DNA of 64,000 nt from Paramoeba atlantica (taxonomy: Eukaryota > Protista > Discosea), in contig CDRNVI010000071.1 of NCBI GenBank assembly GCA_977017575.1, positions 248,001-312,000 of the forward strand, given 5' to 3'. The notes below the pieces were generated by a model. The model made no database searches, had not been told where the DNA came from, and saw nothing but the letters and a program-made list of their open reading frames with translations. Of this stretch, positions 9,668 through 64,000 are shown piece after piece (the stretch's first letter is position 1; every line of letters begins with the position of its first letter). Position numbers and translations under genes: made by a program.

Positions 9668-9975
9668 CTGTGACCCCCCCCTTTATACTTCGCCCATTTT
9701 GAGCAGTAACGAAGTATAAAGGGGGGGTCTGATTTTTTTCCCCGCTGTAAAAAAAAAAAACGCGCCGCTTCGCGGCGCGGCTCATCCCGTTTTCCTGTCT
9801 TTCCTTTTATGTACATAACATATAACATGTATATCACCTTCCATTTCTAGAAGGGAAGACTCAGAACGTTCTTGTTTTTTCCTAAACATTTTTGAAAAAT
9901 TACGAAAATAAATAAAAATCGCCCCCCCTTCGGGGGGGGGCACACAGAAAACGAAGTATAAAAGGGGGGTCACAG
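9668..9975. mobile_element. TA-flanked MITE (CTGT-C-tract family), 308 bp
   Basis: TA|CTGTGACCCCCCCCTTTATACTTCG ... CGAAGTATAAAAGGGGGGTCACAG|TA; the reconstructed target TATAGTACTATA is palindromic. Confidence 0.8.
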
Positions 9976-21326: not shown

Positions 21327-21420
21327 GCCATGTTGTGGAAGGGTGGTCAGCTGGCCATCTCGTGGAAGAGTGGCCGACTGGCCATGTTGTGGAAGAGTGG
21401 CCAGCTGGCCATGTTGTGAA
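21327..21420. repeat. 27-bp tandem repeat, about 3.5 copies
   Basis: Unit approximately GCCATGTTGTGGAAGAGTGGCCAGCTG. Confidence 0.8.
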
Positions 21421-21462
21421 GAAATCAACCGGGTCTGCACCGCCTCGAAGGGCCCGCCGTAT

Positions 21463-21668: not shown

Positions 21669-21868
21669 CGATTATTGTTAGCAAAAAATGGAAATTAATG
21701 AAGGGGGGAGTATAATTTAAACGCATATTAAGAAAAAATAGTCTCCCGATGTGCTGTAAATAGGGGGAACGTGAAGATCTCAAAATTTTGAACTTTAAAG
21801 CGGCGACGGTAAGGCTAAGAGTAACGCACGAATTCTTTTCCTCAATCCATAGGCACCAACCATCTTTC

Positions 21869-23683
21869 TCATTCCATATCTGCAAACAAATCGTACATAT
21901 CACTCTGGTACACACCCGGAGAAAAGTCACCCCCTATACCGAACGACCCGCCGCATGATCCCCCCACAAACTGACAATAAATTTGCAGTAACGAATCCAG
22001 CACCTTGGATCGTATCTGGTCCCGTGCCTCACGGTACCGCTGCAGGTGATCCTCCGGACTTTCCATCGGCTGTCGTTTCAACAACTCCGGGATACCCCCA
22101 TACACCTCCCGCATCACTCTCTTCGCGGAGGTCTCCGTACCCCTTCCAGTGCCAACATTAAATACCGCAAACGCCTCGTTCTGTTCCTGACGAAGCGTTA
22201 AATCCTCCACCTCGGAAGCTACCAGGGGGGAGAACACGGCAGGCGGGGTCGCGAGCACCGAAGGGGGACTCCAGACTTTACCCCTCCCCCCCCCTCCTTC
22301 TCTCTCCCCTACACTCCGTGGGGTCGTACTCGACCCGGAGTGCAGCACGTCACGTATCCCGTGGGCGGGGCCGGGGCGGGCGGCCAGGGTTGCGTGGGTC
22401 CGGGACCCCGGAGTCAACCCACTGGCAGGTTGACGTGTTTTACTACGTTTGTTACGTACCGCTGAGTTGTAGAAGTTGTTGTTGGAGTTGTAGGCTCCGG
22501 TGTCACTGGAGGTTTCCGTAACCGTGTGACCCCGGGGGAGGGGGAGCTCATCGTTTTCCGATGACTGTGGGGAGACACTGGGGTAGGGTACACCCCAGGG
22601 AGAGCTGTAGCACGGGTCACTACGGGTTCTCCAGAACGTGCTCTGGGTGTTCACCGTGAGTCCGGTACGGGTGCGGTTGAGATACTCAAAGTGTTTCAAG
22701 GCACCGTTCTGGCCGTAGCAGTGTAGTGGACGCCAGGGGAGAAAATTCTTCACGCTGGCATAGGACAGCCACATGGGTTCCCCGTTGTAGTCGTCCTGGA
22801 AGGTACGTCGGTTCAGTGCCTCCGGGAGCTTGAGTTTTTCTTTGACTTGTTTGCGCACCAGTCGTGGGGTAACGGGGAGGGTGCGCTCGCGGTAGCTTCG
22901 GTGGCGGGCCGGGATGTGCGCCCAGGCGGCACAATAGTAGAGCTTCGGAGTGGGCATAGCCCAGTGTGCGGCAAGAGACCTTGACAACCAGTCCGCGTCC
23001 GATGCAAGGGAGGTGTAATCTAGCGACGAAGGTGATGACAGGGGAGGGTGATAAAGGGCTGGAGTTTTTTCGATGCTGGAGATGTCGCGTGGGGAGGATG
23101 GAAGGAACGCGGATAGGGGTGTTTCAGAGAGAGGTGAGCAAGCCAACATTTTAGAGGTACACGCAGGACTGTCTGTACGTACGCTCTTTAAAGTTAAAGA
23201 GTTGTTGTGGAACGAAAATATTTTCCGTGGTGCGCGGAGCATTTCAACTTTTTGTGCGAAACTTTCGCTATTCGAACAATCAGTAGAGTAAGGCGCCGAT
23301 TCAGAAATATTTTCAGAGGAGTATTCTTCAAAGCTGATAACGTAGTCAAAACGCTGACCGTTTTGAAAGAGGGTGCGGTTACTCTTGCTCATAAGAGAGG
23401 AATGTATGCCAACCTCTTCTAAGACAGTACGGGTGTTTGACTGCGGCCCGATTGTGTGGTGAATTCCGGCACTTGCAACCCAAAGTGGGGAGCTCGCTAG
23501 CAGTTTCTTGTCGATCTGATTGGAAACGTACGCTTCTTTCTGTAGAAGAAGACTGTCTGCATTGTGATCCACGTTTTTTGCAAAGGATGGATCTGAGAAT
23601 CTTTCCCAATAGTGACGAATAAATGCCTCCGTAATTAGTGTTCTGGCCGTGTTTGTTCGACCCAGTACTGCGACAGCTATCAT
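21869..23683 (-). CDS. Protein with N-terminal catalytically dead LMW-PTP/ArsC-like domain and unknown C-terminal region
   Basis: VLGRTNTARTLITEA...WVASAG...VLEEVGI...FDYVISF follows the LMW-PTP/ArsC fold, but the C(X)5R cysteine is replaced by Gly. Confidence 0.7.
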   Translation of the reverse strand: MIAVAVLGRTNTARTLITEAFIRHYWERFSDPSFAKNVDHNADSLLLQKEAYVSNQIDKKLLASSPLWVASAGIHHTIGPQSNTRTVLEEVGIHSSLMSKSNRTLFQNGQRFDYVISFEEYSSENISESAPYSTDCSNSESFAQKVEMLRAPRKIFSFHNNSLTLKSVRTDSPACTSKMLACSPLSETPLSAFLPSSPRDISSIEKTPALYHPPLSSPSSLDYTSLASDADWLSRSLAAHWAMPTPKLYYCAAWAHIPARHRSYRERTLPVTPRLVRKQVKEKLKLPEALNRRTFQDDYNGEPMWLSYASVKNFLPWRPLHCYGQNGALKHFEYLNRTRTGLTVNTQSTFWRTRSDPCYSSPWGVPYPSVSPQSSENDELPLPRGHTVTETSSDTGAYNSNNNFYNSAVRNKRSKTRQPASGLTPGSRTHATLAARPGPAHGIRDVLHSGSSTTPRSVGEREGGGGRGKVWSPPSVLATPPAVFSPLVASEVEDLTLRQEQNEAFAVFNVGTGRGTETSAKRVMREVYGGIPELLKRQPMESPEDHLQRYREARDQIRSKVLDSLLQIYCQFVGGSCGGSFGIGGDFSPGVYQSDMYDLFADME

Positions 23684-38857: not shown

Positions 38858-39490
38858 TTTTAGGTTCTTCGTTAAGCGCGGCGACGTAATGGGTAGAGAA
38901 TACGTCTCCAACCACACCATTTTTCCGACACAAAAAGACTCCTTTGAGTCCGAAAATTACTTTTTCACCTTTTTCGGTCAAAAATGGGTCATTTTGGGAG
39001 GCGCCCTCGTATCAGAAGAATTAATAATTATTCGTTTATAACCTACGTTGCATTTAGACTCTTCGTTAAACGCGGTGGTTGTTTTCAACTTAGAAGTCAC
39101 TCATGCTGCGCGCTTCGCGTTGAAAACAACCACCGCGTTTAACGAAGAGCCCAAAAAAGAAAATTTTCTTGGAAAGCTGAAGAAAACGGAAAGATTATGG
39201 CCAAAAATAGCCGATTTTCGGGTAAAAATGGGATCTTTTTTGTGTATTCTTGCTCTCAGAGCGCTAAATCTGATATTTGCGTGTGGGAAATCACTAGTAC
39301 GCGTGAAGTAAAGCCTACTGAACGTAATGGGTATATAATGCTACTCCAACCACACCACGCTTTCGACACAAAAAGGCCTCTTGGGGTCCAAAAAATACAT
39401 TTTTGCATTTTTTAGTCAAATGTGACGTTTTGGGAGGCCTACCACGGCTCGAAGAAGGGATATCTTGCGAAAACAATGGCGTAGAAAGCT
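38858..39490 (+). repeat. Dispersed repeat family B: partial copy plus full copy
   Basis: Matches 15830-16262; hairpin at about 39056-39155. Confidence 0.8.
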
Positions 39491-39753
39491 AATACCCAGG
39501 GTAAAGTGGACGAGGGAGATACCAAGTGTAGGTGCGGAGGTTTCCACAGGACAAATGGCATCTCTACCTTTATAGGCGTTTGTCTTCATGCCATAAGGGA
39601 GATACCGTATTTCCTGTGGAAACCTCCGCACTACACTTGGTATCTCCCTCGTCCACTTTACCCTGGGTATTAGCTTTCTACGCCGTTGTTTTCGCAAGGT
39701 ATCCCTTCTTCGAGTCGTGGTAGGCCTCCCAAAATGTTACATATTTGACTAAA
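39411..39753. repeat. About 340-bp foldback: GGAGATAC palindrome (39491-39671) flanked by two oppositely oriented family B ends
   Basis: Arms of about 150 bp are near-perfect reverse complements. Confidence 0.85.
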
Positions 39754-40155
39754 AAAAGCCAAAAAGCCGACTTTTCGTTGAGTACTCAACGAACTTCCTG
39801 ATTTTCGTTGAGATCTCAACGAATCTACCCCCAACCCAATTTTTTTTTACCATTTGTTTCGCCAAATTGGATTTTTTTTTAAAACATTTTTCCGAAAAAA
39901 TCCGAACTTGGCGGACCCGTCCTGTGGATACGCGGGGGGGGGGTCACCCCCGGGTAGGGGGGTGAAAAATGCGCGTCAAGACCCCGGCTACCCCTTCTGA
40001 GGTTCTTTTTCGAAAAATATTTTTTTGCAAAAAAATTTGCTCGACCATGACCCCCCCCTGGACCCCCCTTTTTTTTCAATTTTTTTTTCCCGATTTTTTT
40101 GAATTTTTCAGTTTTGGACCACCGGAGCCCCCTTTTATATTTTTTTCTTCTATTA

Positions 40156-41509
40156 CTGTGCCCCCCCCACTTATAGTGCCGCGGTTTTCGACCAAACGGC
40201 ACTATAAGTTGGGGGTGCACTGTGTTTCAGTTCGATTTTATTAAAGTCCATTTATTTTTCACAGAGTACATTTTTTTCAAAATTGGTACATTTGTTGGTG
40301 ATTCGTGACGAAGAAGCACTGCCCCCTATGCTTACCTTCCTCCCGCGCATGCCCCGAGATGCGCACGGCACTCGTCATCGATTAAGAGCGACTTAACTCC
40401 TATAAGACACTCGCAAAACTTCATAAGCTTAACCCCTGGTCCATCATTGAAACTTTTTGCTTTTTTCCTGAAGATTAACCGGAAACGTTTAAGAATACCT
40501 TCCGGGACTACAGTAAAGTAAACACTTTTGGTCAAGGAGGCTAAAGGGCATATGACTGAATACTACAGATTACTTTGCACTCCTTTTCCACGTTTTCTGA
40601 TCTACTTTACTACTGTTCTTCATCCGAAACATTCGAAAAAATACATCCAAAAAAGTTGTAATTAGCTTTTTTAACCCCTACCTGGCTAGGGGGGGTAGAG
40701 GGTCGCTCGAGTGAAAAGGAACTCGGATTCGGAACGATTGGGTCGAAAAACAGTGGTATACCAAATATTTCCAAAATCGGACAAATTACAAGACCTGTAG
40801 GGGGGGGGGTAAAAGACGGTGAACACCACTGTAGCTTTCTACGCCGTTGTTTCCACAAGATACCCCTTCTTGAAACCGTGACGGTGAAAGTGAAGCATTA
40901 TTTCACATAAAAAATATTTTGTTTCGTTAATTTTTTTATGTGTTCTAAGTGTTGCCTTATCATATTTTACGGGCACTGAAAGTATTTTTCTGACATTTGT
41001 TTACATACAGCTGTACTTTTTTCGCGGTGACGGTACGTTTGATAGTGGGAAAGAAGCGCGACATAATCGGCTGAAGTTCGGCGCAGAAATTGTGAAAAGT
41101 AAGCTAAAGAGAGGAAAACATGAAGATTATGCCCTCCGTCGCCTGTTTTAGCACCTCAAATGACATTGCGAGAACGTAGAAATCGTTCTAGAACAAGGGC
41201 AAGAGAGTTAATTTTTTCTTTTTTACTAAAATAGGGCGATAATAAATGTTTTAAAAAAAGTATGAAATAATGCTTCACTTTGACCGCCGTGACACGTCTC
41301 CAAAATGACGCCCCCCAAAATAGGTGTCCTGGCAAAACCAGGCAAAACGTGGCAAAACCTGGAAAAACCCGGCAAAACTTAACAGGTTTCAACCCTCTTA
41401 CTCTACCTTTTTGGTCAAAAGAAATAGGTCAATTTTTCTGACATTTGTTTTTCAAAACGGCACTTTAAGTGGGGGGGTACCCCGCGGCACTATAAGTGGG
41501 GGGGCACAG
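40156..41509. mobile_element. Non-autonomous TIR element, 1354 bp, with TA target-site duplication
   Basis: TA|CTGTGCCCCCCCCACTTATAGTGCCGCGG ... CCGCGGCACTATAAGTGGGGGGGCACAG|TA. The empty paralogous site at about 12140-12165 has a single TA. Confidence 0.9.
41331..41380. repeat. Five 10-bp tandem units GGCAAAACNN
   Basis: ggcaaaacca ggcaaaacgt ggcaaaacct ggaaaaaccc ggcaaaactt. Confidence 0.85.
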
Positions 41510-41617
41510 TATATTACTGTGTTCCTCCTTATATTTTCACTGTTTTTGTTCACTTTTTCAATAATGGAGGGTAGAGTGGTAGTTATACAACCACCGCAAT
41601 AAGGGAACACTAATTAA

Positions 41618-42067: not shown

Positions 42068-42263
42068 TAGCCCAGGCTAAAATGGAACGGGGAGATACTA
42101 AAGGCAGCTTTGAAAAACCACCACAAACTGGAACGGTATCTCCCGTTAAATATTCTTTTGTTACATTAGAATGCTCTACAAACCGGGAGATACCGTTCCA
42201 GTTTTGTGGTGGTTTTCCAAAGGTGCCTTTAGTATCTCCCCGTTCCATTTTAGCCTGGGTCTA
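42068..42263. repeat. GGAGATAC foldback palindrome, copy 3
   Basis: CCCAGGCTAAAATGGAACGGGGAGATAC...GGTATCTCCCG / CGGGAGATACC...GTATCTCCCCGTTCCATTTTAGCCTGGG. Confidence 0.85.
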
Positions 42264-42374
42264 AAAGTGCTTCTGTTGAAAAAGGGGCGGAGTCGGAGGA
42301 GGAATATTTTTCTTATGTTTTTCGGAGCACAAATGCCGTGATAGCCTTCTATACTAGGTCCCAAAATATTGAAA

Positions 42375-42700
42375 TACAGTAGGGCAGACGATTTTGGAAA
42401 AATATTTTTCTTGCCATTTTTTTCGCGAAGTTGATATTTTTTTGAAAAAAAAATCTGAAAACCGAACTTGGCGGACCTGTCCTGCGGATACGCGGGGGGG
42501 TCACCCCCGGGCATGGGGGTGAAAAATACGCGCCAAGACTCCGGATACCCCTTCTGAGGGTTTGTTTCAAAAGGGAAGTGTTAGAGTATGCCGCGGCGAT
42601 GATTTTTCACCCCTCCACCTGGGGGTACCCCCCTAGTACACGCAGGAGTTATTAATATTTTGTTTTTCAATTTTGGACCGCCGGAGCCCCCTTTTATACC
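42375..42700 (+). repeat. Dispersed repeat family A, copy 3
   Basis: Same core as 11860-12135, with an altered internal segment. Confidence 0.8.
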
Positions 42701-42894
42701 GGTGTAACGGTTATTAGGGATAAAAGTAATTAAGGCAGAACGAATTTAAAAATTAAGTATTGCCTTAATTAAAGTTGCCATAATTAAAGTTGTCTTAATT
42801 TTAGAGCGGGGGGGCACGCGTCTGTGGTGATCGGCAGAATATGGCAGAAATGGGCAATAATCTGCTGTTAATGAGCACTAGCGGAGAAAAAAAG

Positions 42895-43779
42895 TCACAT
42901 GTAGAAAAAAAAAGACCAGCCGTTTACTTTCAACTTTCCGTTCACGCACTCCGTGAGGAATTTCCTTTTTTCTTCCCGATCGTCGTCTTCAATTCCTAGT
43001 CTGTTAGCTCGACACTTTAGTTCAACCTTTAACTGGTTGTTCATGCTTTCTACGGTGTTCGTAGAAACACCTTCGCTCGTAACCCACTCTACTCGGTGGT
43101 TTATAAATTTGTGGTTCACAAGGGAACCGAGTGCCAATCTCGCACGCCATCCGTCAGTCTTGACCACAGTGCGCGTCCCAGCGGCCAAATGCAGCACATG
43201 GAGCGTCATTGTAGACTCCGATCGATTCGCTAGGCTCTTTACAAACACTTCCTGTGCCTGATCGGTCACATTAGTTACCACCAAAGTGTGGAACCATCGA
43301 TGGCCCTGCTTGCGCACGGCATGGCTGCGATTACATCCCCCCCTCTTCACCTTACTTGTACAGGTCTCATCTTTTTGCATATAATTGACGGTTCCTCCTG
43401 CATTAAGCCAACGAATATCGTGAGCTTGTGACACTAATAATATTATTTCTTGAGAGAAACGAGTAACGGTCTTGACGTTCACCTTTGCTTCGTTAACAAT
43501 AAACTTGTGTGGCAATGCTTCTGCTATACCGTACGCCGTCTCCGTTTGCTGAACAAGGGTCCTTCCTTCCAGAATTTCGCTCGACAAGCGTGTCTATCAG
43601 TACAAAGCCAGTAGTTCCCTTTCTGTTGCAACTTCCTCTATGTGACAGGATTTCCGCTTCGCGGGGCATTTTTTTTTGGACCGGAAGTATAAAAGGGGGG
43701 TGCTGATTTTTCGTCTGGATGAAAACGGAAGCATAAAGGTGGGGGGTGACCCCCCTGAAGCATAAAGGGGGGGTGACAG
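42895..43779 (-). mobile_element. Decayed Merlin (IS1595/IS1016-like) DDE transposase with an upstream TIR-like end
   Basis: QKDET, NRSESTM, VKTDGWRA, HKFINH and TNTVES..QLK motifs. The 5' part has stops and a frameshift (MP-KRKSCHIEEVATERELLALY**). The end at 43779 reads TA|CTGTCACCCCCCCTTTATGCTTC. Confidence 0.85.
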
Positions 43780-43979
43780 TATTTACTAGATTAGAAAGAT
43801 CGTCAAAAAACAGAGAAAAGGAATAAGAACGATAAACTATCCATTTCCTCCGAAATTACATATTTTTTATATTTAGAGCTAAGTGAATTTTGATTAAGAA
43901 GTCTTTTTTGTTTGGTACATGCAAATCTTAGCGATAATAGAAATCAAAAAACAAAGCTCAGCCTTTTTTCTAAGGCCAT

Positions 43980-46028
43980 TTACTGGCGCAGCGGCTTAGC
44001 AACCTTTTCACGTTTTTTTCCAATATCAACGTGATACATACTTTCTTTCATACGATGACTAAACCTCTCATCAATCGAACCAATTTCTCGAGCTGCGCGG
44101 TTCATGTCGATGGAAGAAATAGGAGTATCTTCATTAAGCTTCCCATTAAGATTTGTGGCGCTACCGAGACAGGATATTTCAGGTTGAAACTGTAGGCCTT
44201 GACGAGCTAAACGACGGGCTTGTCGTTCGATTCTATTTTCTCTTGCTTGCGCTTGTTTCTTTTGTTTGTGTAGCCTACGCTTGCGACTGCGTTTAGAAAT
44301 ATCATTTTCCGATCGTACGTCTTGCATCTGTTCATCTGAGTCAACTGTATTCTCCAGGTTATTTTTCTGAAAATTTCTATCTGGACTTTCCGCAGTATCT
44401 AAGTTGCTATTTCGAATTATGGTTTTCAAATCCTCAGTGGAGCATGGCGTTTCTACTCTTGTTTCCGTTTCTTCAACATTTTCGGTCTTAGAACGCTGTT
44501 TTTGACGTTGTGCCTTTCGCTTAACATCTCGTCGTTCTCCAACTGTTTTTACGTTTTGCAATGCAAGATGATACATTGATTCCTCGTGGATCTTTTCCAC
44601 CACAGCATCGTCATGAGCGGTAAACTCCGTGTAAAAGTCACCATTGTTGGTGGAGTGATTAGGAAACTTGCTGACCTCACTCGATACGCTCTCTAACTCA
44701 TCAATGTAAGGCTCACTAGAAATCTTCGTTGAGGACCCGTCCTCTTGCAAATCCTTTTCATTATCGTGGTCTTTATCTTCCGTTTGATAACCTTCTAGCA
44801 GGCATGCGTATTTTTCCTTTTGAGAGCTACAAGATCTTCCCATAGTAACTTGACTTTCTTCGCTTTCAGATGCTACATAGGCATCCAAGTCACCCATTTG
44901 CATGTCTTTCATTGCAAATGCATTCTTGAGTGCAGCAGTACGCTTTAGGTCAGTCATGTCCCAAAGCAAGGAAGCCGCACTTGGAGTATTAGACATACCA
45001 GATGTTTCCCCTGTACTCGGTAAGATCCTTTCATGAGTTTGTAGTGCGGAGAGGGCAGGGGAGAGGACATATTCAAGAGGCAGAGTGTGACAATGATCAG
45101 AGACATTTTCCTCGTCAAAGTTCATTTCTTGTGGAACGTATCTTAGAAACATTACAATTCCAGCGAATTCCACTTCTCTCTCATTACATTGCTCGTATAA
45201 TTCGCTAGCTGTTGCTGGTGTGTCACATTCGATTATGGCATAGTAAAATTTTTTTCGCAGCTCACCGTATGCAATAATTTTTTCCGGATCCATATCGTTG
45301 TTGATGTCCGCCGAAGTGTCCGCCGAATGAAATTCTTCTTCATTGGGAACTTCCGATTCTTTTTTGAGGCGTTTCATTTTCAAATGCGGCCTCTCGCTCT
45401 GGATTTTAGAATTTGACTGAATGCCCTTTTCTGCACGCCAAACATTAGGAACCTGTTCCCCTTCTCGATGCTGAATCCCCACTTCACTGACATAAATTTT
45501 TACGTCTCGTACTGCTCCACCATGTGGGGTAAAAGAATGAAATAATGCAAAAAGATCAAGGGCCGTTACGTAATCCCACTCGAATTCAACTAACGCAAGT
45601 CGTGAAGTAGCCTCTATAGTTGCATCCTCCGAGGGACACTCCGTCCCATGTTCAGTGCTTGAGACTTGAGGTACCATAGCGACTGAGTTATTATCTGACT
45701 GATTCCCTGAAAACTCCCCGATAGAGTCATCATTTCCATCAGAACAGATTTCCATATGTTCCTTATGCATAGTTAAATGATTCTTAAAGCGTATGTCGGA
45801 AGCTGTGTCAAGCGAAGCGTCAGTAACATTTTTATTCACGAAATGGTTTTTCTTCGGCAATTTGCATACGCGTTTTTTGCTTTCTCGGTCATTGTATTGC
45901 ACTCGAGAGTTTGAATCACGATATAGCGTACGAAATCGGGGGTCGTGTAGCTCTCTAAAGCGATTGTCATTTGTACCACGAATTTTCCGACTGCGCTGAG
46001 TCGTCGCTTTTTGCGTAATTTCACACAT
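43980..46028 (-). CDS. ESF1: Pre-rRNA processing protein ESF1
   Basis: RLALVEFEWD..TALDLFALFHSF.P.GG.V..V.IY.SE.G and FYYAIIECD...A..LYEQC...E.E....LRYVP; N- and C-terminal D.RF motifs. Confidence 0.9.
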   Translation of the reverse strand: MCEITQKATTQRSRKIRGTNDNRFRELHDPRFRTLYRDSNSRVQYNDRESKKRVCKLPKKNHFVNKNVTDASLDTASDIRFKNHLTMHKEHMEICSDGNDDSIGEFSGNQSDNNSVAMVPQVSSTEHGTECPSEDATIEATSRLALVEFEWDYVTALDLFALFHSFTPHGGAVRDVKIYVSEVGIQHREGEQVPNVWRAEKGIQSNSKIQSERPHLKMKRLKKESEVPNEEEFHSADTSADINNDMDPEKIIAYGELRKKFYYAIIECDTPATASELYEQCNEREVEFAGIVMFLRYVPQEMNFDEENVSDHCHTLPLEYVLSPALSALQTHERILPSTGETSGMSNTPSAASLLWDMTDLKRTAALKNAFAMKDMQMGDLDAYVASESEESQVTMGRSCSSQKEKYACLLEGYQTEDKDHDNEKDLQEDGSSTKISSEPYIDELESVSSEVSKFPNHSTNNGDFYTEFTAHDDAVVEKIHEESMYHLALQNVKTVGERRDVKRKAQRQKQRSKTENVEETETRVETPCSTEDLKTIIRNSNLDTAESPDRNFQKNNLENTVDSDEQMQDVRSENDISKRSRKRRLHKQKKQAQARENRIERQARRLARQGLQFQPEISCLGSATNLNGKLNEDTPISSIDMNRAAREIGSIDERFSHRMKESMYHVDIGKKREKVAKPLRQ

Positions 46029-50708: not shown

Positions 50709-52715
50709 TTAGTCTACCTCTTCAACCTTGGGTCCCGAGCTCGCCGGTGGGGCCGGGGCGGCTCCCCCGGCACCTGGGAATCCCTCCGGCATTCCTCCAG
50801 GAAATCCCCCGGGCATCCCACCGGGAAACCCTCCCGGGGCTGCACCCTCCGCCCCTGGGGCGCCTCCACCCTGCTGGTACATCTTGGTCATGATGGGTGT
50901 GCATTTCTGCTCCAGCTCCTTCTGCCGCCCTTCGTACTCCTCCTTGCTCGCCTCCTGACTGGACTCAAGCCACTTGATGGTTTCCTCCACGGCATCGAGA
51001 AGGGTCTGCTTGTCGCCCGCGTCCAGCTTTCCCCCCACATTGGGGTCATTCGCGGTGTTCTTCATGCTGTACGCGTAGTTCTCGAGTCCGTTCTTCGCCT
51101 CGATACGCTCACGTTGCTTCCGGTCCTCCTCCTCGAACTTTGCGGACTCGTTCACCATGCGCTCGATCTCCTCCTTGCTGAGACGCCCCTTGTCGTTGGT
51201 GATGGTGATCTGGTTCTTCTTCCCCGTGCCCTTCTCCTCGGCGCTGACGTTCAGGATACCATTGGCATCGATGTCAAACGTGACTTCGATTTGTGGCACC
51301 CCGCGCGGCGCGGGTGGAATTCCCGAGAGATCGAATGTGCCGAGAAGGTGGCAGTCGCGTGTCATCGCGCGCTCACCCTCGAACACCTGGATATGCACCC
51401 CCGGTTGGTTGTCGCTGTACGTGGAGAAGGTCTGGCTCTTCTTGGTCGGGATCGTCGTGTTGCGCTTGATCAGGGACGTCATGACACCCCCGGCGGTTTC
51501 GATACCCAACGTCAGCGGGGCGACATCCAGGAGAAGAAGTCCCTCCGTCTGCTTACTCTTCCCGCCGGTGAGGATGTAGGCTTGCACCGCGGCACCGTAC
51601 GCCACAGCCTCGTCCGGGTTAATACTCTTGTTGAGTTCCTTTCCGCCAAAGAAGTCGGAGACGAGCTGCTGCACCTTGGGAATACGAGTCGAACCACCGA
51701 CCAGAACCACGTCGTGCACCGTGCGCTTGTCGATCTTCGCATCCGTCAGGACTTGTTCCACCGGCTTGAGTGTGGAGCGGAAGAGGTCCGCGCAAAGCTC
51801 CTCGAATCGCGCACGGGTGATGCTCGTGTAGAAGTCAATCCCCTCAAAAAGAGAGTCAATCTCCACGGAACTCTGAGCCGCGGAAGACAGAGTACGCTTG
51901 GCTCGCTCGCACGCGGTGCGAAGACGGCGTAGTGCTCGCTGGTTCTGCGACAGATCCTTCTTGTGCTTTCGCTTAAATTCCTCGACAAAGTGGTTCACGA
52001 GACGGTTGTCAAAGTCCTCACCACCGAGATGGGTGTCTCCCGCCGTGGCCTTGACCTCGAAGATTCCACCATCGATGGTGAGCAGAGTGACGTCAAAGGT
52101 GCCGCCTCCGAGATCAAAGATGAGTACGTTCCGTTCTTGTTGGTCCGAGATCTTATCCAGGCCGTACGCAATCGCCGCCGCCGTGGGCTCGTTGATGATT
52201 CGAAGCACTTCCAGTCCGGCAATCGAGCCCGCGTCCTTCGTGGCCTGTCGTTGGGAGTCGTTGAAGTACGCCGGGACGGTGACCACCGCCTTCTTGACCT
52301 CCTTACCGAGATATGCCTCCGCAATCTCCTTCATCTTAATCAACACCATGGAGCTAATCTCCTCCGGCGTGAAGGTCTTTGCCTCGCTCTTGTACTGGAC
52401 CTCCATCACGGGCTTCTCGTCCCCCTGGGAACGTACCTTAAAGGGCCAGTGCTTCATGTCGCTCTGAACAACGGAGTCGGAGATCTTACGCCCGATTAAC
52501 CGCTTCGCATCAAACACACTGTTGGTCGGATTCATCGCTACCTGGTTCTTCGCGGCATCCCCAATCAGACGTTCAGTGTCCGTGAAGGCCACGTAGGACG
52601 GAGTCGTGTAGTTCCCCTGGTCATTCGCAATGATTACCACACGCTCGTTCTGCCACACCCCAACACAGGAGTAGGTGGTCCCGAGATCGATACCAATAGC
52701 TCCTTCGTACGTCAT
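50709..52715 (-). CDS. HSP70: Cytosolic heat shock protein 70, copy 1
   Basis: [35 protein letters not shown]-type repeats and terminal EEVD. Confidence 0.99.
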
Positions 52716-53073
52716 CAAGTTAATAATAAAATGGAGAGATATGCAAAAGCAATGAAGCTATAGAATTAACTACATTTGAATTCAAGTTCCAACTAACAGA
52801 CGTAATAATGCCGTGATATTGGGCGCGTAGAGGTCTTTTTTAAAGAACATATTGAAGCCAAAGCGGTAAAAAACACGACGCACTCATTTGCTCCAAAGTT
52901 GTTAGAACCAAAGTACGCTAAACAAGGTCAAACTAAATTATTTTACCCCAATTTTCCGAATTACGCACAAATAATTGCGTGGTTTACATTGTTAAATAAT
53001 TTATTTGTCAAATATGTGATCCGAAAAGAAAAAAGGAAAACAAGCAATCCGTTGGAGCAGTCCTGCCCTTGAA

Positions 53074-55080
53074 TTAGTCTACCTCTTCAACCTTGGGTCC
53101 CGAGCTCGCCGGTGGGGCTGGGGCGGCTCCCCCGGCACCTGGGAATCCCTCCGGCATTCCTCCAGGAAATCCCCCGGGCATCCCACCGGGAAACCCTCCC
53201 GGGGCTGCACCCTCCGCCCCTGGGGCGCCTCCACCCTGCTGGTACATCTTGGTCATGATGGGTGTGCATTTCTGCTCCAGCTCCTTCTGCCGCCCTTCGT
53301 ACTCCTCCTTGCTCGCCTCCTGACTGGACTCAAGCCACTTGATGGTTTCCTCCACGGCATCGAGAAGGGTCTGCTTGTCGCCCTCGTCCAGCTTTCCCCC
53401 CACATTGGGGTCATTCGCGGTGTTCTTCATGCTGTACGCGTAGTTCTCGAGTCCGTTCTTCGCCTCGATACGCTCACGTTGCTTCCGGTCCTCCTCCTCG
53501 AACTTTGCGGACTCGTTCACCATGCGCTCGATCTCCTCCTTGCTGAGACGCCCCTTGTCGTTGGTGATGGTGATCTGGTTCTTCTTCCCCGTGCCCTTCT
53601 CCTCGGCGCTGACGTTCAGGATACCATTGGCATCGATGTCAAACGTGACTTCGATTTGTGGCACCCCGCGCGGCGCGGGTGGAATTCCCGAGAGATCGAA
53701 TGTGCCGAGAAGGTGGCAGTCGCGTGTCATCGCGCGCTCACCCTCGAACACCTGGATATGCACCCCCGGTTGGTTGTCGCTGTACGTGGAGAAGGTCTGG
53801 CTCTTCTTGGTCGGGATCGTCGTGTTGCGCTTGATCAGGGACGTCATGACACCCCCGGCGGTTTCGATACCCAACGTCAGCGGGGCGACATCCAGGAGAA
53901 GAAGTCCCTCCGTCTGCTTACTCTTCCCGCCGGTGAGGATGTAGGCTTGCACCGCGGCACCGTACGCCACAGCCTCGTCCGGGTTAATACTCTTGTTGAG
54001 TTCCTTTCCGCCAAAGAAGTCGGAGACGAGCTGCTGCACCTTGGGAATACGAGTCGAACCACCGACCAGAACCACGTCGTGCACCGTGCGCTTGTCGATC
54101 TTCGCATCCGTCAGGACTTGTTCCACCGGCTTGAGTGTGGAGCGGAAGAGGTCCGCGCAAAGCTCCTCGAATCGCGCACGGGTGATGCTCGTGTAGAAGT
54201 CAATCCCCTCAAAAAGAGAGTCAATCTCCACGGAACTCTGAGCCGCGGAAGACAGAGTACGCTTGGCTCGCTCGCACGCGGTGCGAAGACGGCGTAGTGC
54301 TCGCTGGTTCTGCGACAGATCCTTCTTGTGCTTTCGCTTAAATTCCTCGACAAAGTGGTTCACGAGACGGTTGTCAAAGTCCTCACCACCGAGATGGGTG
54401 TCTCCCGCCGTGGCCTTGACCTCGAAGATTCCACCATCGATGGTGAGCAGAGTGACGTCAAAGGTGCCGCCTCCGAGATCAAAGATGAGTACGTTCCGTT
54501 CTTGTTGGTCCGAGATCTTATCCAGGCCGTACGCAATCGCCGCCGCCGTGGGCTCGTTGATGATTCGAAGCACTTCCAGTCCGGCAATCGAGCCCGCGTC
54601 CTTCGTGGCCTGTCGTTGGGAGTCGTTGAAGTACGCCGGGACGGTGACCACCGCCTTCTTGACCTCCTTACCGAGATATGCCTCCGCAATCTCCTTCATC
54701 TTAATCAACACCATGGAGCTAATCTCCTCCGGCGTGAAGGTCTTTGCCTCGCTCTTGTACTGGACCTCCATCACGGGCTTCTCGTCCCCCTGGGAACGTA
54801 CCTTAAAGGGCCAGTGCTTCATGTCGCTCTGAACAACGGAGTCGGAGATCTTACGCCCGATTAACCGCTTCGCATCAAACACACTGTTGGTCGGATTCAT
54901 CGCTACCTGGTTCTTCGCGGCATCCCCAATCAGACGTTCAGTGTCCGTGAAGGCCACGTAGGACGGAGTCGTGTAGTTCCCCTGGTCATTCGCAATGATT
55001 ACCACACGCTCGTTCTGCCACACCCCAACACAGGAGTAGGTGGTCCCGAGATCGATACCAATAGCTCCTTCGTACGTCAT
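53074..55080 (-). CDS. HSP70: Cytosolic heat shock protein 70, copy 2 (KLDEG variant)
   Basis: As copy 1, with one A-to-E change. Confidence 0.99.
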
Positions 55081-55439
55081 CAAGTTAATAATAAAATGGA
55101 GAGATATGCAAAAGCAATGAAGCTATAGAATTAACTACATTTGAATTCAAGTTCCAACTAACAGACGTAATAATGCCGTGATATTGGGCGCGTAGAGGTC
55201 TTTTTTAAAGAACATATTGAAGCCAAAGCGGTAAAAAACACGACGCACTCATTTGCTCCAAAGTTGTTAGAACCAAAGTACGCTAAACAAGGTCAAACTA
55301 AATTATTTTACCCCAATTTTCCGAATTACGCACAAATAATTGCGTGGTTTACATTGTTAAATAATTTATTTGTCAAATATGTGATCCGAAAAGAAAAAAG
55401 GAAAACAAGCAATCCGTTGGAGCAGTCCTAACCCTTGAA

Positions 55440-57446
55440 TTAGTCTACCTCTTCAACCTTGGGTCCCGAGCTCGCCGGTGGGGCCGGGGCGGCTCCCCCG
55501 GCACCTGGGAATCCCTCCGGCATTCCTCCAGGAAATCCCCCGGGCATCCCACCGGGAAACCCTCCCGGGGCTGCACCCTCCGCCCCTGGGGCGCCTCCAC
55601 CCTGCTGGTACATCTTGGTCATGATGGGTGTGCATTTCTGCTCCAGCTCCTTCTGCCGCCCTTCGTACTCCTCCTTGCTCGCCTCCTGACTGGACTCAAG
55701 CCACTTGATGGTTTCCTCCACGGCATCGAGAAGGGTCTGCTTGTCGCCCGCGTCCAGCTTTCCCCCCACATTGGGGTCATTCGCGGTGTTCTTCATGCTG
55801 TACGCGTAGTTCTCGAGTCCGTTCTTCGCCTCGATACGCTCACGTTGCTTCCGGTCCTCCTCCTCGAACTTTGCGGACTCGTTCACCATGCGCTCGATCT
55901 CCTCCTTGCTGAGACGCCCCTTGTCGTTGGTGATGGTGATCTGGTTCTTCTTCCCCGTGCCCTTCTCCTCGGCGCTGACGTTCAGGATACCATTGGCATC
56001 GATGTCAAACGTGACTTCGATTTGTGGCACCCCGCGCGGCGCGGGTGGAATTCCCGAGAGATCGAATGTGCCGAGAAGGTGGCAGTCGCGTGTCATCGCG
56101 CGCTCACCCTCGAACACCTGGATATGCACCCCCGGTTGGTTGTCGCTGTACGTGGAGAAGGTCTGGCTCTTCTTGGTCGGGATCGTCGTGTTGCGCTTGA
56201 TCAGGGACGTCATGACACCCCCGGCGGTTTCGATACCCAACGTCAGCGGGGCGACATCCAGGAGAAGAAGTCCCTCCGTCTGCTTACTCTTCCCGCCGGT
56301 GAGGATGTAGGCTTGCACCGCGGCACCGTACGCCACAGCCTCGTCCGGGTTAATACTCTTGTTGAGTTCCTTTCCGCCAAAGAAGTCGGAGACGAGCTGC
56401 TGCACCTTGGGAATACGAGTCGAACCACCGACCAGAACCACGTCGTGCACCGTGCGCTTGTCGATCTTCGCATCCGTCAGGACTTGTTCCACCGGCTTGA
56501 GTGTGGAGCGGAAGAGGTCCGCGCAAAGCTCCTCGAATCGCGCACGGGTGATGCTCGTGTAGAAGTCAATCCCCTCAAAAAGAGAGTCAATCTCCACGGA
56601 ACTCTGAGCCGCGGAAGACAGAGTACGCTTGGCTCGCTCGCACGCGGTGCGAAGACGGCGTAGTGCTCGCTGGTTCTGCGACAGATCCTTCTTGTGCTTT
56701 CGCTTAAATTCCTCGACAAAGTGGTTCACGAGACGGTTGTCAAAGTCCTCACCACCGAGATGGGTGTCTCCCGCCGTGGCCTTGACCTCGAAGATTCCAC
56801 CATCGATGGTGAGCAGAGTGACGTCAAAGGTGCCGCCTCCGAGATCAAAGATGAGTACGTTCCGTTCTTGTTGGTCCGAGATCTTATCCAGGCCGTACGC
56901 AATCGCCGCCGCCGTGGGCTCGTTGATGATTCGAAGCACTTCCAGTCCGGCAATCGAGCCCGCGTCCTTCGTGGCCTGTCGTTGGGAGTCGTTGAAGTAC
57001 GCCGGGACGGTGACCACCGCCTTCTTGACCTCCTTACCGAGATATGCCTCCGCAATCTCCTTCATCTTAATCAACACCATGGAGCTAATCTCCTCCGGCG
57101 TGAAGGTCTTTGCCTCGCTCTTGTACTGGACCTCCATCACGGGCTTCTCGTCCCCCTGGGAACGTACCTTAAAGGGCCAGTGCTTCATGTCGCTCTGAAC
57201 AACGGAGTCGGAGATCTTACGCCCGATTAACCGCTTCGCATCAAACACACTGTTGGTCGGATTCATCGCTACCTGGTTCTTCGCGGCATCCCCAATCAGA
57301 CGTTCAGTGTCCGTGAAGGCCACGTAGGACGGAGTCGTGTAGTTCCCCTGGTCATTCGCAATGATTACCACACGCTCGTTCTGCCACACCCCAACACAGG
57401 AGTAGGTGGTCCCGAGATCGATACCAATAGCTCCTTCGTACGTCAT
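55440..57446 (-). CDS. HSP70: Cytosolic heat shock protein 70, copy 3
   Basis: As copy 1. Confidence 0.99.
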
Positions 57447-57805
57447 CAAGTTAATAATAAAATGGAGAGATATGCAAAAGCAATGAAGCTATAGAATTAA
57501 CTACATTTGAATTCAAGTTCCAACTAACAGACGTAATAATGCCGTGATATTGGGCGCGTAGAGGTCTTTTTTAAAGAACATATTGAAGCTAAAGCGGTAA
57601 AAAACACGACGCACTCATTTGCTCCAAAGTTGTTAGAACCAAAGTACGCTAAACAAGGTCAAACTAAATTATTTTACCCCAATTTTCCGAATTACGCACA
57701 AATAATTGCGTGGTTTACATTGTTAAATAATTTATTTGTCAAATATGTGATCCGAAAAGAAAAAAGGAAAACAAGCAATCCGTTGGAGCAGTCCTAACCC
57801 TTGAA

Positions 57806-59812
57806 TTAGTCTACCTCTTCAACCTTGGGTCCCGAGCTCGCCGGTGGGGCCGGGGCGGCTCCCCCGGCACCTGGGAATCCCTCCGGCATTCCTCCAGGAA
57901 ATCCCCCGGGCATCCCACCGGGAAACCCTCCCGGGGCTGCACCCTCCGCCCCTGGGGCGCCTCCACCCTGCTGGTACATCTTGGTCATGATGGGTGTGCA
58001 TTTCTGCTCCAGCTCCTTCTGCCGCCCTTCGTACTCCTCCTTGCTCGCCTCCTGACTGGACTCAAGCCACTTGATGGTTTCCTCCACGGCATCGAGAAGG
58101 GTCTGCTTGTCGCCCGCGTCCAGCTTTCCCCCCACATTGGGGTCATTCGCGGTGTTCTTCATGCTGTACGCGTAGTTCTCGAGTCCGTTCTTCGCCTCGA
58201 TACGCTCACGTTGCTTCCGGTCCTCCTCCTCGAACTTTGCGGACTCGTTCACCATGCGCTCGATCTCCTCCTTGCTGAGACGCCCCTTGTCGTTGGTGAT
58301 GGTGATCTGGTTCTTCTTCCCCGTGCCCTTCTCCTCGGCGCTGACGTTCAGGATACCATTGGCATCGATGTCAAACGTGACTTCGATTTGTGGCACCCCG
58401 CGCGGCGCGGGTGGAATTCCCGAGAGATCGAATGTGCCGAGAAGGTGGCAGTCGCGTGTCATCGCGCGCTCACCCTCGAACACCTGGATATGCACCCCCG
58501 GTTGGTTGTCGCTGTACGTGGAGAAGGTCTGGCTCTTCTTGGTCGGGATCGTCGTGTTGCGCTTGATCAGGGACGTCATGACACCCCCGGCGGTTTCGAT
58601 ACCCAACGTCAGCGGGGCGACATCCAGGAGAAGAAGTCCCTCCGTCTGCTTACTCTTCCCGCCGGTGAGGATGTAGGCTTGCACCGCGGCACCGTACGCC
58701 ACAGCCTCGTCCGGGTTAATACTCTTGTTGAGTTCCTTTCCGCCAAAGAAGTCGGAGACGAGCTGCTGCACCTTGGGAATACGAGTCGAACCACCGACCA
58801 GAACCACGTCGTGCACCGTGCGCTTGTCGATCTTCGCATCCGTCAGGACTTGTTCCACCGGCTTGAGTGTGGAGCGGAAGAGGTCCGCGCAAAGCTCCTC
58901 GAATCGCGCACGGGTGATGCTCGTGTAGAAGTCAATCCCCTCAAAAAGAGAGTCAATCTCCACGGAACTCTGAGCCGCGGAAGACAGAGTACGCTTGGCT
59001 CGCTCGCACGCGGTGCGAAGACGGCGTAGTGCTCGCTGGTTCTGCGACAGATCCTTCTTGTGCTTTCGCTTAAATTCCTCGACAAAGTGGTTCACGAGAC
59101 GGTTGTCAAAGTCCTCACCACCGAGATGGGTGTCTCCCGCCGTGGCCTTGACCTCGAAGATTCCACCATCGATGGTGAGCAGAGTGACGTCAAAGGTGCC
59201 GCCTCCGAGATCAAAGATGAGTACGTTCCGTTCTTGTTGGTCCGAGATCTTATCCAGGCCGTACGCAATCGCCGCCGCCGTGGGCTCGTTGATGATTCGA
59301 AGCACTTCCAGTCCGGCAATCGAGCCCGCGTCCTTCGTGGCCTGTCGTTGGGAGTCGTTGAAGTACGCCGGGACGGTGACCACCGCCTTCTTGACCTCCT
59401 TACCGAGATATGCCTCCGCAATCTCCTTCATCTTAATCAACACCATGGAGCTAATCTCCTCCGGCGTGAAGGTCTTTGCCTCGCTCTTGTACTGGACCTC
59501 CATCACGGGCTTCTCGTCCCCCTGGGAACGTACCTTAAAGGGCCAGTGCTTCATGTCGCTCTGAACAACGGAGTCGGAGATCTTACGCCCGATTAACCGC
59601 TTCGCATCAAACACACTGTTGGTCGGATTCATCGCTACCTGGTTCTTCGCGGCATCCCCAATCAGACGTTCAGTGTCCGTGAAGGCCACGTAGGACGGAG
59701 TCGTGTAGTTCCCCTGGTCATTCGCAATGATTACCACACGCTCGTTCTGCCACACCCCAACACAGGAGTAGGTGGTCCCGAGATCGATACCAATAGCTCC
59801 TTCGTACGTCAT
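57806..59812 (-). CDS. HSP70: Cytosolic heat shock protein 70, copy 4
   Basis: As copy 1. Confidence 0.99.
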
Positions 59813-60170
59813 CAAGTTAATAATAAAATGGAGAGATATGCAAAAGCAATGAAGCTATAGAATTAACTACATTTGAATTCAAGTTCCAACTAACAGACGT
59901 AATAATGCCGTGATATTGGGCGCGTAGAGGTCTTTTTTAAAGAACATATTGAAGCCAAAGCGGTAAAAAACACGACGCACTCATTTGCTCCAAAGTTGTT
60001 AGAACCAAAGTACGCTAAACAAGGTCAAACTAAATTATTTTACCCCAATTTTCCGAATTACGCACAAATAATTGCGTGGTTTACATTGTTAAATAATTTA
60101 TTTGTCAAATATGTGATCCGAAAAGAAAAAAGGAAAACAAGCAATCCGTTGGAGCAGTCCTGCCCTTGAA

Positions 60171-62177
60171 TTAGTCTACCTCTTCAACCTTGGGTCCCGA
60201 GCTCGCCGGTGGGGCCGGGGCGGCTCCCCCGGCACCTGGGAATCCCTCCGGCATTCCTCCAGGAAATCCCCCGGGCATCCCACCGGGAAACCCTCCCGGG
60301 GCTGCACCCTCCGCCCCTGGGGCGCCTCCACCCTGCTGGTACATCTTGGTCATGATGGGTGTGCATTTCTGCTCCAGCTCCTTCTGCCGCCCTTCGTACT
60401 CCTCCTTGCTCGCCTCCTGACTGGACTCAAGCCACTTGATGGTTTCCTCCACGGCATCGAGAAGGGTCTGCTTGTCGCCCGCGTCCAGCTTTCCCCCCAC
60501 ATTGGGGTCATTCGCGGTGTTCTTCATGCTGTACGCGTAGTTCTCGAGTCCGTTCTTCGCCTCGATACGCTCACGTTGCTTCCGGTCCTCCTCCTCGAAC
60601 TTTGCGGACTCGTTCACCATGCGCTCGATCTCCTCCTTGCTGAGACGCCCCTTGTCGTTGGTGATGGTGATCTGGTTCTTCTTCCCCGTGCCCTTCTCCT
60701 CGGCGCTGACGTTCAGGATACCATTGGCATCGATGTCAAACGTGACTTCGATTTGTGGCACCCCGCGCGGCGCGGGTGGAATTCCCGAGAGATCGAATGT
60801 GCCGAGAAGGTGGCAGTCGCGTGTCATCGCGCGCTCACCCTCGAACACCTGGATATGCACCCCCGGTTGGTTGTCGCTGTACGTGGAGAAGGTCTGGCTC
60901 TTCTTGGTCGGGATCGTCGTGTTGCGCTTGATCAGGGACGTCATGACACCCCCGGCGGTTTCGATACCCAACGTCAGCGGGGCGACATCCAGGAGAAGAA
61001 GTCCCTCCGTCTGCTTACTCTTCCCGCCGGTGAGGATGTAGGCTTGCACCGCGGCACCGTACGCCACAGCCTCGTCCGGGTTAATACTCTTGTTGAGTTC
61101 CTTTCCGCCAAAGAAGTCGGAGACGAGCTGCTGCACCTTGGGAATACGAGTCGAACCACCGACCAGAACCACGTCGTGCACCGTGCGCTTGTCGATCTTC
61201 GCATCCGTCAGGACTTGTTCCACCGGCTTGAGTGTGGAGCGGAAGAGGTCCGCGCAAAGCTCCTCGAATCGCGCACGGGTGATGCTCGTGTAGAAGTCAA
61301 TCCCCTCAAAAAGAGAGTCAATCTCCACGGAACTCTGAGCCGCGGAAGACAGAGTACGCTTGGCTCGCTCGCACGCGGTGCGAAGACGGCGTAGTGCTCG
61401 CTGGTTCTGCGACAGATCCTTCTTGTGCTTTCGCTTAAATTCCTCGACAAAGTGGTTCACGAGACGGTTGTCAAAGTCCTCACCACCGAGATGGGTGTCT
61501 CCCGCCGTGGCCTTGACCTCGAAGATTCCACCATCGATGGTGAGCAGAGTGACGTCAAAGGTGCCGCCTCCGAGATCAAAGATGAGTACGTTCCGTTCTT
61601 GTTGGTCCGAGATCTTATCCAGGCCGTACGCAATCGCCGCCGCCGTGGGCTCGTTGATGATTCGAAGCACTTCCAGTCCGGCAATCGAGCCCGCGTCCTT
61701 CGTGGCCTGTCGTTGGGAGTCGTTGAAGTACGCCGGGACGGTGACCACCGCCTTCTTGACCTCCTTACCGAGATATGCCTCCGCAATCTCCTTCATCTTA
61801 ATCAACACCATGGAGCTAATCTCCTCCGGCGTGAAGGTCTTTGCCTCGCTCTTGTACTGGACCTCCATCACGGGCTTCTCGTCCCCCTGGGAACGTACCT
61901 TAAAGGGCCAGTGCTTCATGTCGCTCTGAACAACGGAGTCGGAGATCTTACGCCCGATTAACCGCTTCGCATCAAACACACTGTTGGTCGGATTCATCGC
62001 TACCTGGTTCTTCGCGGCATCCCCAATCAGACGTTCAGTGTCCGTGAAGGCCACGTAGGACGGAGTCGTGTAGTTCCCCTGGTCATTCGCAATGATTACC
62101 ACACGCTCGTTCTGCCACACCCCAACACAGGAGTAGGTGGTCCCGAGATCGATACCAATAGCTCCTTCGTACGTCAT
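60171..62177 (-). CDS. HSP70: Cytosolic heat shock protein 70, copy 5
   Basis: As copy 1. Confidence 0.99.
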
Positions 62178-62535
62178 CAAGTTAATAATAAAATGGAGAG
62201 ATATGCAAAAGCAATGAAGCTATAGAATTAACTACATTTGAATTCAAGTTCCAACTAACAGACGTAATAATGCCGTGATATTGGGCGCGTAGAGGTCTTT
62301 TTTAAAGAACATATTGAAGCCAAAGCGGTAAAAAACACGACGCACTCATTTGCTCCAAAGTTGTTAGAACCAAAGTACGCTAAACAAGGTCAAACTAAAT
62401 TATTTTACCCCAATTTTCCGAATTACGCACAAATAATTGCGTGGTTTACATTGTTAAATAATTTATTTGTCAAATATGTGATCCGAAAAGAAAAAAGGAA
62501 AACAAGCAATCCGTTGGAGCAGTCCTGCCCTTGAA

Positions 62536-64000
62536 TTAGTCTACCTCTTCAACCTTGGGTCCCGAGCTCGCCGGTGGGGCTGGGGCGGCTCCCCCGGCAC
62601 CTGGGAATCCCTCCGGCATTCCTCCAGGAAATCCCCCGGGCATCCCACCGGGAAACCCTCCCGGGGCTGCACCCTCCGCCCCTGGGGCGCCTCCACCCTG
62701 CTGGTACATCTTGGTCATGATGGGTGTGCATTTCTGCTCCAGCTCCTTCTGCCGCCCTTCGTACTCCTCCTTGCTCGCCTCCTGACTGGACTCAAGCCAC
62801 TTGATGGTTTCCTCCACGGCATCGAGAAGGGTCTGCTTGTCGCCCTCGTCCAGCTTTCCCCCCACATTGGGGTCATTCGCGGTGTTCTTCATGCTGTACG
62901 CGTAGTTCTCGAGTCCGTTCTTCGCCTCGATACGCTCACGTTGCTTCCGGTCCTCCTCCTCGAACTTTGCGGACTCGTTCACCATGCGCTCGATCTCCTC
63001 CTTGCTGAGACGCCCCTTGTCGTTGGTGATGGTGATCTGGTTCTTCTTCCCCGTGCCCTTCTCCTCGGCGCTGACGTTCAGGATACCATTGGCATCGATG
63101 TCAAACGTGACTTCGATTTGTGGCACCCCGCGCGGCGCGGGTGGAATTCCCGAGAGATCGAATGTGCCGAGAAGGTGGCAGTCGCGTGTCATCGCGCGCT
63201 CACCCTCGAACACCTGGATATGCACCCCCGGTTGGTTGTCGCTGTACGTGGAGAAGGTCTGGCTCTTCTTGGTCGGGATCGTCGTGTTGCGCTTGATCAG
63301 GGACGTCATGACACCCCCGGCGGTTTCGATACCCAACGTCAGCGGGGCGACATCCAGGAGAAGAAGTCCCTCCGTCTGCTTACTCTTCCCGCCGGTGAGG
63401 ATGTAGGCTTGCACCGCGGCACCGTACGCCACAGCCTCGTCCGGGTTAATACTCTTGTTGAGTTCCTTTCCGCCAAAGAAGTCGGAGACGAGCTGCTGCA
63501 CCTTGGGAATACGAGTCGAACCACCGACCAGAACCACGTCGTGCACCGTGCGCTTGTCGATCTTCGCATCCGTCAGGACTTGTTCCACCGGCTTGAGTGT
63601 GGAGCGGAAGAGGTCCGCGCAAAGCTCCTCGAATCGCGCACGGGTGATGCTCGTGTAGAAGTCAATCCCCTCAAAAAGAGAGTCAATCTCCACGGAACTC
63701 TGAGCCGCGGAAGACAGAGTACGCTTGGCTCGCTCGCACGCGGTGCGAAGACGGCGTAGTGCTCGCTGGTTCTGCGACAGATCCTTCTTGTGCTTTCGCT
63801 TAAATTCCTCGACAAAGTGGTTCACGAGACGGTTGTCAAAGTCCTCACCACCGAGATGGGTGTCTCCCGCCGTGGCCTTGACCTCGAAGATTCCACCATC
63901 GATGGTGAGCAGAGTGACGTCAAAGGTGCCGCCTCCGAGATCAAAGATGAGTACGTTCCGTTCTTGTTGGTCCGAGATCTTATCCAGGCCGTACGCAATC
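62536..64000 (-). CDS. HSP70: Cytosolic heat shock protein 70, copy 6 (5' end outside the window; KLDEG variant)
   Basis: Open to the window edge; the visible C-terminal part matches copy 2. Confidence 0.98.

Follow-up and report, generated by a model that had tools for sequence, protein, structure and literature searches.

Stowaway-like MITEs are TA-targeting non-autonomous elements that are moved by Tc1/mariner-type transposases. Transposons of the Merlin superfamily, which is related to the bacterial IS1595/IS1016 family (Feschotte 2004, summarised in PMC8101967), carry TIRs of at least 24 nt that start with 5'-GG and are flanked by TSDs of 8–9 bp (PMC8101967). For the Merlins of Bodo saltans and Perkinsela sp., no TIRs or TSDs were found (PMC8101967).

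The locus described here lies in a stretch of 64,000 nucleotides that was analysed as a whole and is referred to below as the window. The original prediction had placed a Merlin/IS1595-type transposase behind a TA-flanked terminus of the CTGT family and offered two readings, namely, a Merlin-like lineage with TA targeting that mobilizes the MITEs sharing this terminus or a chance juxtaposition. Because the active-site geometry of the transposase determines TSD length, a TA-targeting Merlin would break the rule that defines the superfamily. In our analysis, it was the chance juxtaposition that stood, both pieces being cut and their copy numbers being different, whereas the TA-targeting lineage was not upheld.

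The transposase relic, denoted M1, shares with the Merlin superfamily the DDE_Tnp_IS1595 domain, the D/D/E residues, and a Cys-rich N-terminal remnant; GG-initiated TIRs and 8-bp TSDs are found on elements related to it, both in this genome and in another assembly. Unlike members of the superfamily, M1 has no TIRs of its own and, with only one end present, no readable TSD; it is cut at both ends, and the end next to it is not GG-initiated and comes from another family. The Merlins of Bodo saltans and Perkinsela sp. are comparable in that they, too, are degenerate low-copy relics in kinetoplastid-type genomes, without recognizable TIRs or TSDs (PMC8101967). The genome analyzed here also contains a Merlin MITE with intact TIRs and an 8-bp TSD (40883–41285), whereas no such elements were found in those two species.

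We take the CTGT family, of which this genome contains tens of copies, to be a Stowaway-like, TA-targeting MITE family. In common with such MITEs, it makes TA duplications (proven for the relative at 40156–41509, with TA flanks also at the 9668 MITE and at element A of locus L006), has short C-rich TIRs and subterminal repeats, and is small and non-coding. It differs from them in its CTGT terminus, the described families having CAGT or CTCC, and in keeping a poly(A) run and a GC hairpin about 100 nt inside the end; furthermore, the copy at 43779 is only half an element.

Genomic setting of the locus

The genes of the window lie on one strand, with ESF1, Fer2, and Maf as neighbors and a tandem HSP70 array, and the window appears to be of the kinetoplastid type. 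The HSP70 array (50709–63825, minus strand) consists of at least six genes of 669 codons each, with a period of ~2,365 bp. The repeat nest occupies the 5 kb between Maf and ESF1; its components, together with the relevant loci on other contigs, are listed in Table 1.

Table 1. Features of the repeat nest, related elements inside and outside the window, and contig depth in run X1
Feature	Position	Strand	Evidence or remarks
TA-flanked MITE, 308 bp, closest CTGT subfamily	9668..9975		Same repeat motif; whole poly(A) and GC hairpin
CTGTG-TIR element, complete, 1.35 kb	40156..41509		TA duplication: filled site here, empty site in X copy at ~12148
Merlin-derived MITE, 403 bp, nested in CTGTG element	40883..41285	+	TIRs, TSD, tail remnant
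SINE-like family X copy, cut off at 42698	42375..42698		Other copies run further
Repeat R1	42699..42808	+	~25–50x single-copy depth; starts with TA followed by CCGGTGTAACGGTTATTAGGG; three TTGCCTTAATT-type subterminal repeats
Repeat R2	42809..42912		~12–25x single-copy depth; in place of Merlin C-terminus and 3' UTR
Merlin/IS1595-type transposase relic M1, 744 bp	42913..43656	-	Pfam match, paralogues, homologues
Breakpoint between MITE fragment and M1	43654..43656		CGG (minus strand) common to both sides
5' fragment of CTGT-family TA-targeting MITE, ~126 bp	43654..43779	-	Motifs, depth, hairpin comparison
GC hairpin of MITE fragment, first arm and loop	43654–43668	-	
Poly(A) run of MITE fragment	43669–43677	-	
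Inner CACCCCCC..TTTATRCTTC motif copies of MITE fragment (n = 2)	43728–43743, 43684–43699	-	
TIR of MITE fragment, 23 nt	43757–43779	-	
TA beside CTGT terminus	43780..43781		On one side only at this copy, no duplication readable
Element A	L006, 2478–4465		~2 kb; TA on both sides; 24 bp upstream of Merlin ATG
Element B	L006, 5398 onward		Starts at TA in 3' UTR motif GCGCAATTTAG..TA
D locus	L001, 6222–6889		
D locus	L002, 1070–2812 = L010, 3858–5411		One locus, two haplotypes
Young multi-copy Merlin family	L011 and L012, 3411–4566		325-residue transposase; TIRs GGGGAAATCCCACGAATATTGCCGCT starting with GG
X1 depth, unique flank (single copy)			54
X1 depth, CTGT terminus	43703–43763		1,354 (~25x single copy)
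X1 depth, Merlin by the junction	43459–43641		44–85
X1 depth, remaining Merlin body			120–440
X1 depth, R1/R2 region	42727–42909		640–2,800
X1 depth, family X			15,000–22,000

Self-comparison of the window identified copies of the SINE-like family X at 11849–12242, at 39838–40155 plus 41510–41603 (a copy split by the CTGTG element), and at 42375–42698. This family has hundreds of copies, with contig depth 300–400 times that of single-copy DNA. The right end of X looks tRNA-like, but ARAGORN calls no tRNA in it, and tRNA and Rfam scans of the nest yielded no tRNA and only hairpin matches below threshold. The possibility that the whole of 42699–43779 is one clean insertion into X was considered and rejected because the continuation of X is absent after 43781. 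Palindromic MITE-like elements are also present at 39420–39742 and 42071–42259, with arms of 112 nt and 57 nt, respectively, each 96% complementary.

The CTGT terminus is one end of a truncated MITE

On the minus strand, the CTGT terminus reads TA followed by CTGTCACCCCCCCTTTATGCTTC. The end motif CTGTSACCCCCC, searched as a 12-mer with at most 1 mismatch, was found at 5 sites in the window (0.35 expected), that is, at both ends of the MITE at 9668–9975, at both ends of the element at 40156–41509, and at 43768–43779. The subterminal repeat CCCCCCTTTATRCTTC (at most 2 mismatches) was found at 6 sites compared to 0.06 expected, three of these in the fragment analyzed here (43684–43699, 43728–43743, and 43757–43772) and the other three in the 9668 MITE. 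A TA-flanked CTGT end with three subterminal repeats, as described in the original prediction, is far above chance, and the resemblance of this terminus to those of the 9668–9975 MITE and the 40156–41509 element was borne out by the shared CTGTSACCCCCC ends.

As also anticipated, no second CTGT TIR enclosing the open reading frame (ORF) at 42895–43587 was detected in the window. Because there is a single TIR here, the CTGT element at 43779 is half an element. Paired TIRs around a short non-coding interior are lacking in this copy, whereas the complete relatives have the pair. The general layout of the family consists of the TIR, the subterminal repeats, a poly(A) run, and, ~100 nt from the end, the GC hairpin GCGNCGC-TTCG-GCGNCGC, which is whole in three elements, the 9668 MITE and both A and B of L006. 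At 43779, this layout reaches inward to TGCCCCGCGAAGCGG and is cut past the loop, 4 bases short of a whole hairpin. Another CTGT copy, located on a 4.4-kb contig from run X2, matches 43670–43781 only; the TA is kept, and both sides diverge.

Positions 1–6602 of a twin contig from the same assembly (L009) are 98.9% identical to 50379–43781 of the window, over 6.6 kb that include NAT10, Fer2, and ESF1. All likeness is lost precisely at the T of the TA next to the CTGT terminus; from there, L009 continues with GGAGATTCTGCAG and repeated TGCTACCCAGTG motifs. This contig, reached via ESF1, was assessed as a possible empty site on the other haplotype and was dismissed because the DNA past the TA is unrelated; neither inverted repeats nor Merlin sequences were found in L009. 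The break could reflect a structural difference between haplotypes or the boundary of a segmental duplication. Farther along, L009 contains a 554-codon ORF (8301–9965, plus strand) without a Pfam match, for which the look-alikes in a protein atlas point weakly toward a tyrosine recombinase/integrase (score 0.80); this ORF may represent a Crypton- or DIRS-like element.

The Merlin transposase relic is cut at both ends

The ORF at 42895–43587 (minus strand, 230 codons) matched the Pfam family PF12762 (DDE_Tnp_IS1595) with 28.5 bits (1.7e-6), a score slightly over the curated cut-off of 27 bits. In the alignment with homologues, D73, D145, and E180 of M1 are invariant; the catalytic D, D, and E residues are kept, and the assignment to Merlin/IS1595-type transposases made in the original prediction was confirmed. 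The closest proteins are Merlin-type transcripts of the prokinetoplastid Papus ankaliazontas (42–46% identity), and a search of the full library returned 93 relatives of M1. Scans of metagenomes yielded 98 matches to the protein pattern, 0 of which were confirmed, and 0 matches to the TIR pattern.

Comparison with paralogues and full-length homologues showed that M1 lacks the first ~45 and the last ~20 codons. On the N-terminal side, a Cys-rich remnant (YWLCTDRHACRAKF) is encoded at 43588–43656, in a different frame from the ORF and with a stop, and upstream of 43656, no likeness to Merlin was detected in any frame. The transposase start had been placed ~110 bp inside the CTGT end; the ATG in question (43667–43669) is part of the hairpin derived from the MITE, and M1 lacks its true N-terminus. 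On the C-terminal side, M1 reads KVNGWSFFFYM followed by a stop, whereas in all other copies and homologues (P0005, P0006, P0020, P0044, P0007, and P0013), KVNG is followed by the tail SRFRRIL..LFCESV; P0044 is a third paralogue, from locus L007, and P0007 and P0013 are full-length homologues, as are P0008, P0012, and P0014, which also have the tail. The likeness of M1 to the deletion derivatives described below (D) stops at 42913, where the depth changes as well. The adjoining repeat R2 is unrelated to Merlin, and loose contig ends lie at 42808, next to it. A motif at 42821 that also occurs in D (TCTGTGGTGAT) is an 11-mer on the wrong strand and was treated as a chance match.

No inverted-repeat partner enclosing the M1 ORF was found in the window, and the adjoining end starts with CTGT, not GG. 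M1 is a new but dead member of the Merlin superfamily. Elsewhere in the window, a short Merlin remnant (16266–16379, plus strand; SKPKKGRNNRSSHIRQGGST), 45% identical to P0003 over 40 residues, adjoins another repeat family.

The junction is present in a single copy

The local alignment between the window and the L006 paralogue begins at 43656, inside the poly(A) and GC hairpin region, and the last 3 bases of the MITE, CGG, are at the same time the first 3 of the Merlin alignment, that is, a 3-bp microhomology. Depth across the nest was derived from contigs of four public runs aligned to 42300–44100, the figures in Table 1 being those of run X1. The junction is bridged with 0 differences by contigs from X1 (43406–43731) and X4 (43586–43763), at a depth of 42–66, and contig ctg2091l (locus L003, ENA assembly ERZ24900291) is 99.8% identical across it. 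Because the bridging contigs show no differences and have single-copy depth, the join is real, unique, and was never amplified. The Merlin/CTGT composite is immobile and single copy.

Paralogues and deletion derivatives of M1

The paralogue M2, at locus L006, is 82–85% identical to 42986–43656 of the window and has coding sequence for another 130 bp upstream, up to an ATG that opens with MDCHGCEK; in the window, the MITE occupies this place. The same start is seen in P0003 (MDCQGC), P0009 (MECDGC), and P0010. The Merlin of L006 is bracketed by a pair of outward-facing CTGT ends (CTGTCCCCCC-type elements). Element A is packed with nested repeats and has no long ORFs, and the 3' UTR motif GCGCAATTTAG..TA, at which element B starts, is unbroken in three other copies, among D and M3. 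Given the TA flanks of A and the position of B at a TA within a 3' UTR whole in other copies, the CTGT MITEs of L006 are insertions into the Merlin.

Internally deleted derivatives (D) from the same assembly are 93–96% identical to 42913–42964 and 43339–43435. They have 27-bp, non-CTGT TIRs, which read TA followed by AAYCRACTGTACGGATATTATTCGC, and many TTATTCGCA subterminal repeats. At L002, the one complete locus, there is a TA beside both TIRs and no 8-bp TSD. P0020, encoded at L010, was considered as a third copy of D and discounted because it represents the other haplotype of the L002 locus and provides no independent TSD; among the sequences compared, no paralogous flank that would give an empty site for D was found. 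The flanks of D at L002 form a further inverted repeat (ACTCCKTAAATCA). There is a slight chance that a sublineage of the Merlin clade makes TA instead of 8-bp duplications, with ends that are not of the CTGT type.

From 42701, the repeat R1 reads GGTGTAACGGTTATTAGGG, which is GG-initiated, and at 42699, it has a core related to that of D and likewise preceded by TA. The core GTGTAACSGTTA recurs upstream of the L006 paralogue (M2), where a similar core, GTGTAACCGTTA, is located ~240 bp ahead of the start. From these sequence matches, R1 may be the cognate 3' end of the M1 Merlin family. Among the few loci of this genome that were compared, no copy of the M1 family has both ends and a TSD defined, and the full-length relatives at L004 and L005 of another assembly, each present as a single copy, yielded no convincing TIRs or TSD.

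Merlin elements with both ends kept

The MITE nested in the CTGTG element has GG-initiated TIRs of 23 nt, GGTGAAAGTGAAGCATTATTTCA and GGTCAAAGTGAAGCATTATTTCA (22/23 matching), and is flanked by an 8-bp TSD, ACCGTGAC (40875–40882) and GCCGTGAC (41286–41293), with 7/8 positions matching. Its derivation from Merlin is apparent from a remnant of the C-terminal tail at 41023–41178 that is ~50% identical to P0007 and P0013 (pairwise E ~1e-6). In another organism (assembly ERZ21831265), the loci L011 and L012 are 98.7% identical over 1,172 bp and have exact 8-bp TSDs, CAAAATCC and AAAAATTC (8/8). The ends of L011 and L012 agree with the rule of GG-initiated TIRs and 8–9-bp TSDs (PMC8101967). The original prediction had named GG-initiated TIRs with 8–9-bp TSDs in other copies as one half of the evidence against TA targeting, and the element at 40883–41285 and L011/L012 have precisely such ends.

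Origin of the composite

Taken together, these observations make it highly probable that two unrelated DNA transposons each contributed a piece, the CTGT end from one and the Merlin from the other, with the join at 43654–43656; that the CTGT end is neither owned nor used by the Merlin; and that Merlins in this genome have the usual GG-initiated TIRs and generate duplications of 8 bp. In the most likely history, a Merlin of the M1 family would first have inserted into an X repeat, and its 3' end may survive as R1. A CTGT MITE would then have inserted at a TA within the 5' region of the Merlin or immediately ahead of it, as at L006. Finally, a deletion with a 3-bp microhomology would have fused the hairpin of the MITE to the Merlin at approximately codon 45, removing the inner half of the MITE, the 5' TIR and UTR of the Merlin, and the remaining part of X.

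The same junction would result from capture of filler DNA during repair of a CTGT element. In this scenario, a non-autonomous CTGT element took up a Merlin fragment as filler for gap repair after excision and lost its other end later. The interiors of CTGT elements indeed vary widely, from 308 bp (9668) through 1.35 kb (40156) to 2 kb (element A of L006), and the 3-bp microhomology suits template switching. However, there is no second CTGT TIR; the junction is single copy, so that the chimera never spread; the Merlin material in the 40156 element is an ordinary insertion with its own TIRs and 8-bp TSD; and the left interior is a further mosaic that consists of R2, R1, and the cut-off copy of X. 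We therefore consider capture unlikely. Under either history, be it deletion or capture, the CTGT and Merlin parts are functionally unrelated.

That a Merlin-like lineage has CTGT(C/G)ACCCCCC TIRs of its own, makes TA duplications, and mobilizes the CTGT MITEs appears very improbable. In its favor, the relic is located inward of a real CTGT end with a TA flank, L006 likewise has a Merlin relic adjoining CTGT ends, and D at L002 combines TA beside both TIRs with the lack of an 8-bp TSD. That CTGT ends neighbor Merlin relics at two loci of the clade seems to go beyond coincidence, even though the two arrangements are oppositely oriented. Nevertheless, both the Merlin and the MITE are cut exactly at the junction, the CTGT ends of L006 point away from the Merlin and represent insertions at TA within it, the Merlin-derived elements in which both ends are kept have GG-initiated TIRs and 8-bp TSDs, and D, the closest relatives of M1, have non-CTGT TIRs. 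At the few loci compared, no autonomous partner of the CTGT MITEs was found, and the case against a Merlin-type partner is an indirect one.

A chimeric join made by the assembler, although conceivable in a dense repeat nest with some families in hundreds of copies, is hardly credible given that two public runs (X1 and X4) bridge the junction without differences and that ctg2091l is nearly identical over it.

Implications

With the fusion of two dead transposons as the preferred explanation, the locus represents an ordinary accumulation of dead transposons rather than a novel Merlin that targets TA. Such a Merlin, if true, would have revealed what drives the TA-flanked MITEs in this genome; at this locus, the evidence removes this reading. 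In nests of this kind, the location of a transposase inward of a TIR is no evidence for their belonging to one element. What remains is modest, namely, Merlin relics and Merlin MITEs with intact GG-initiated TIRs and 8-bp TSDs in a kinetoplastid-type genome.
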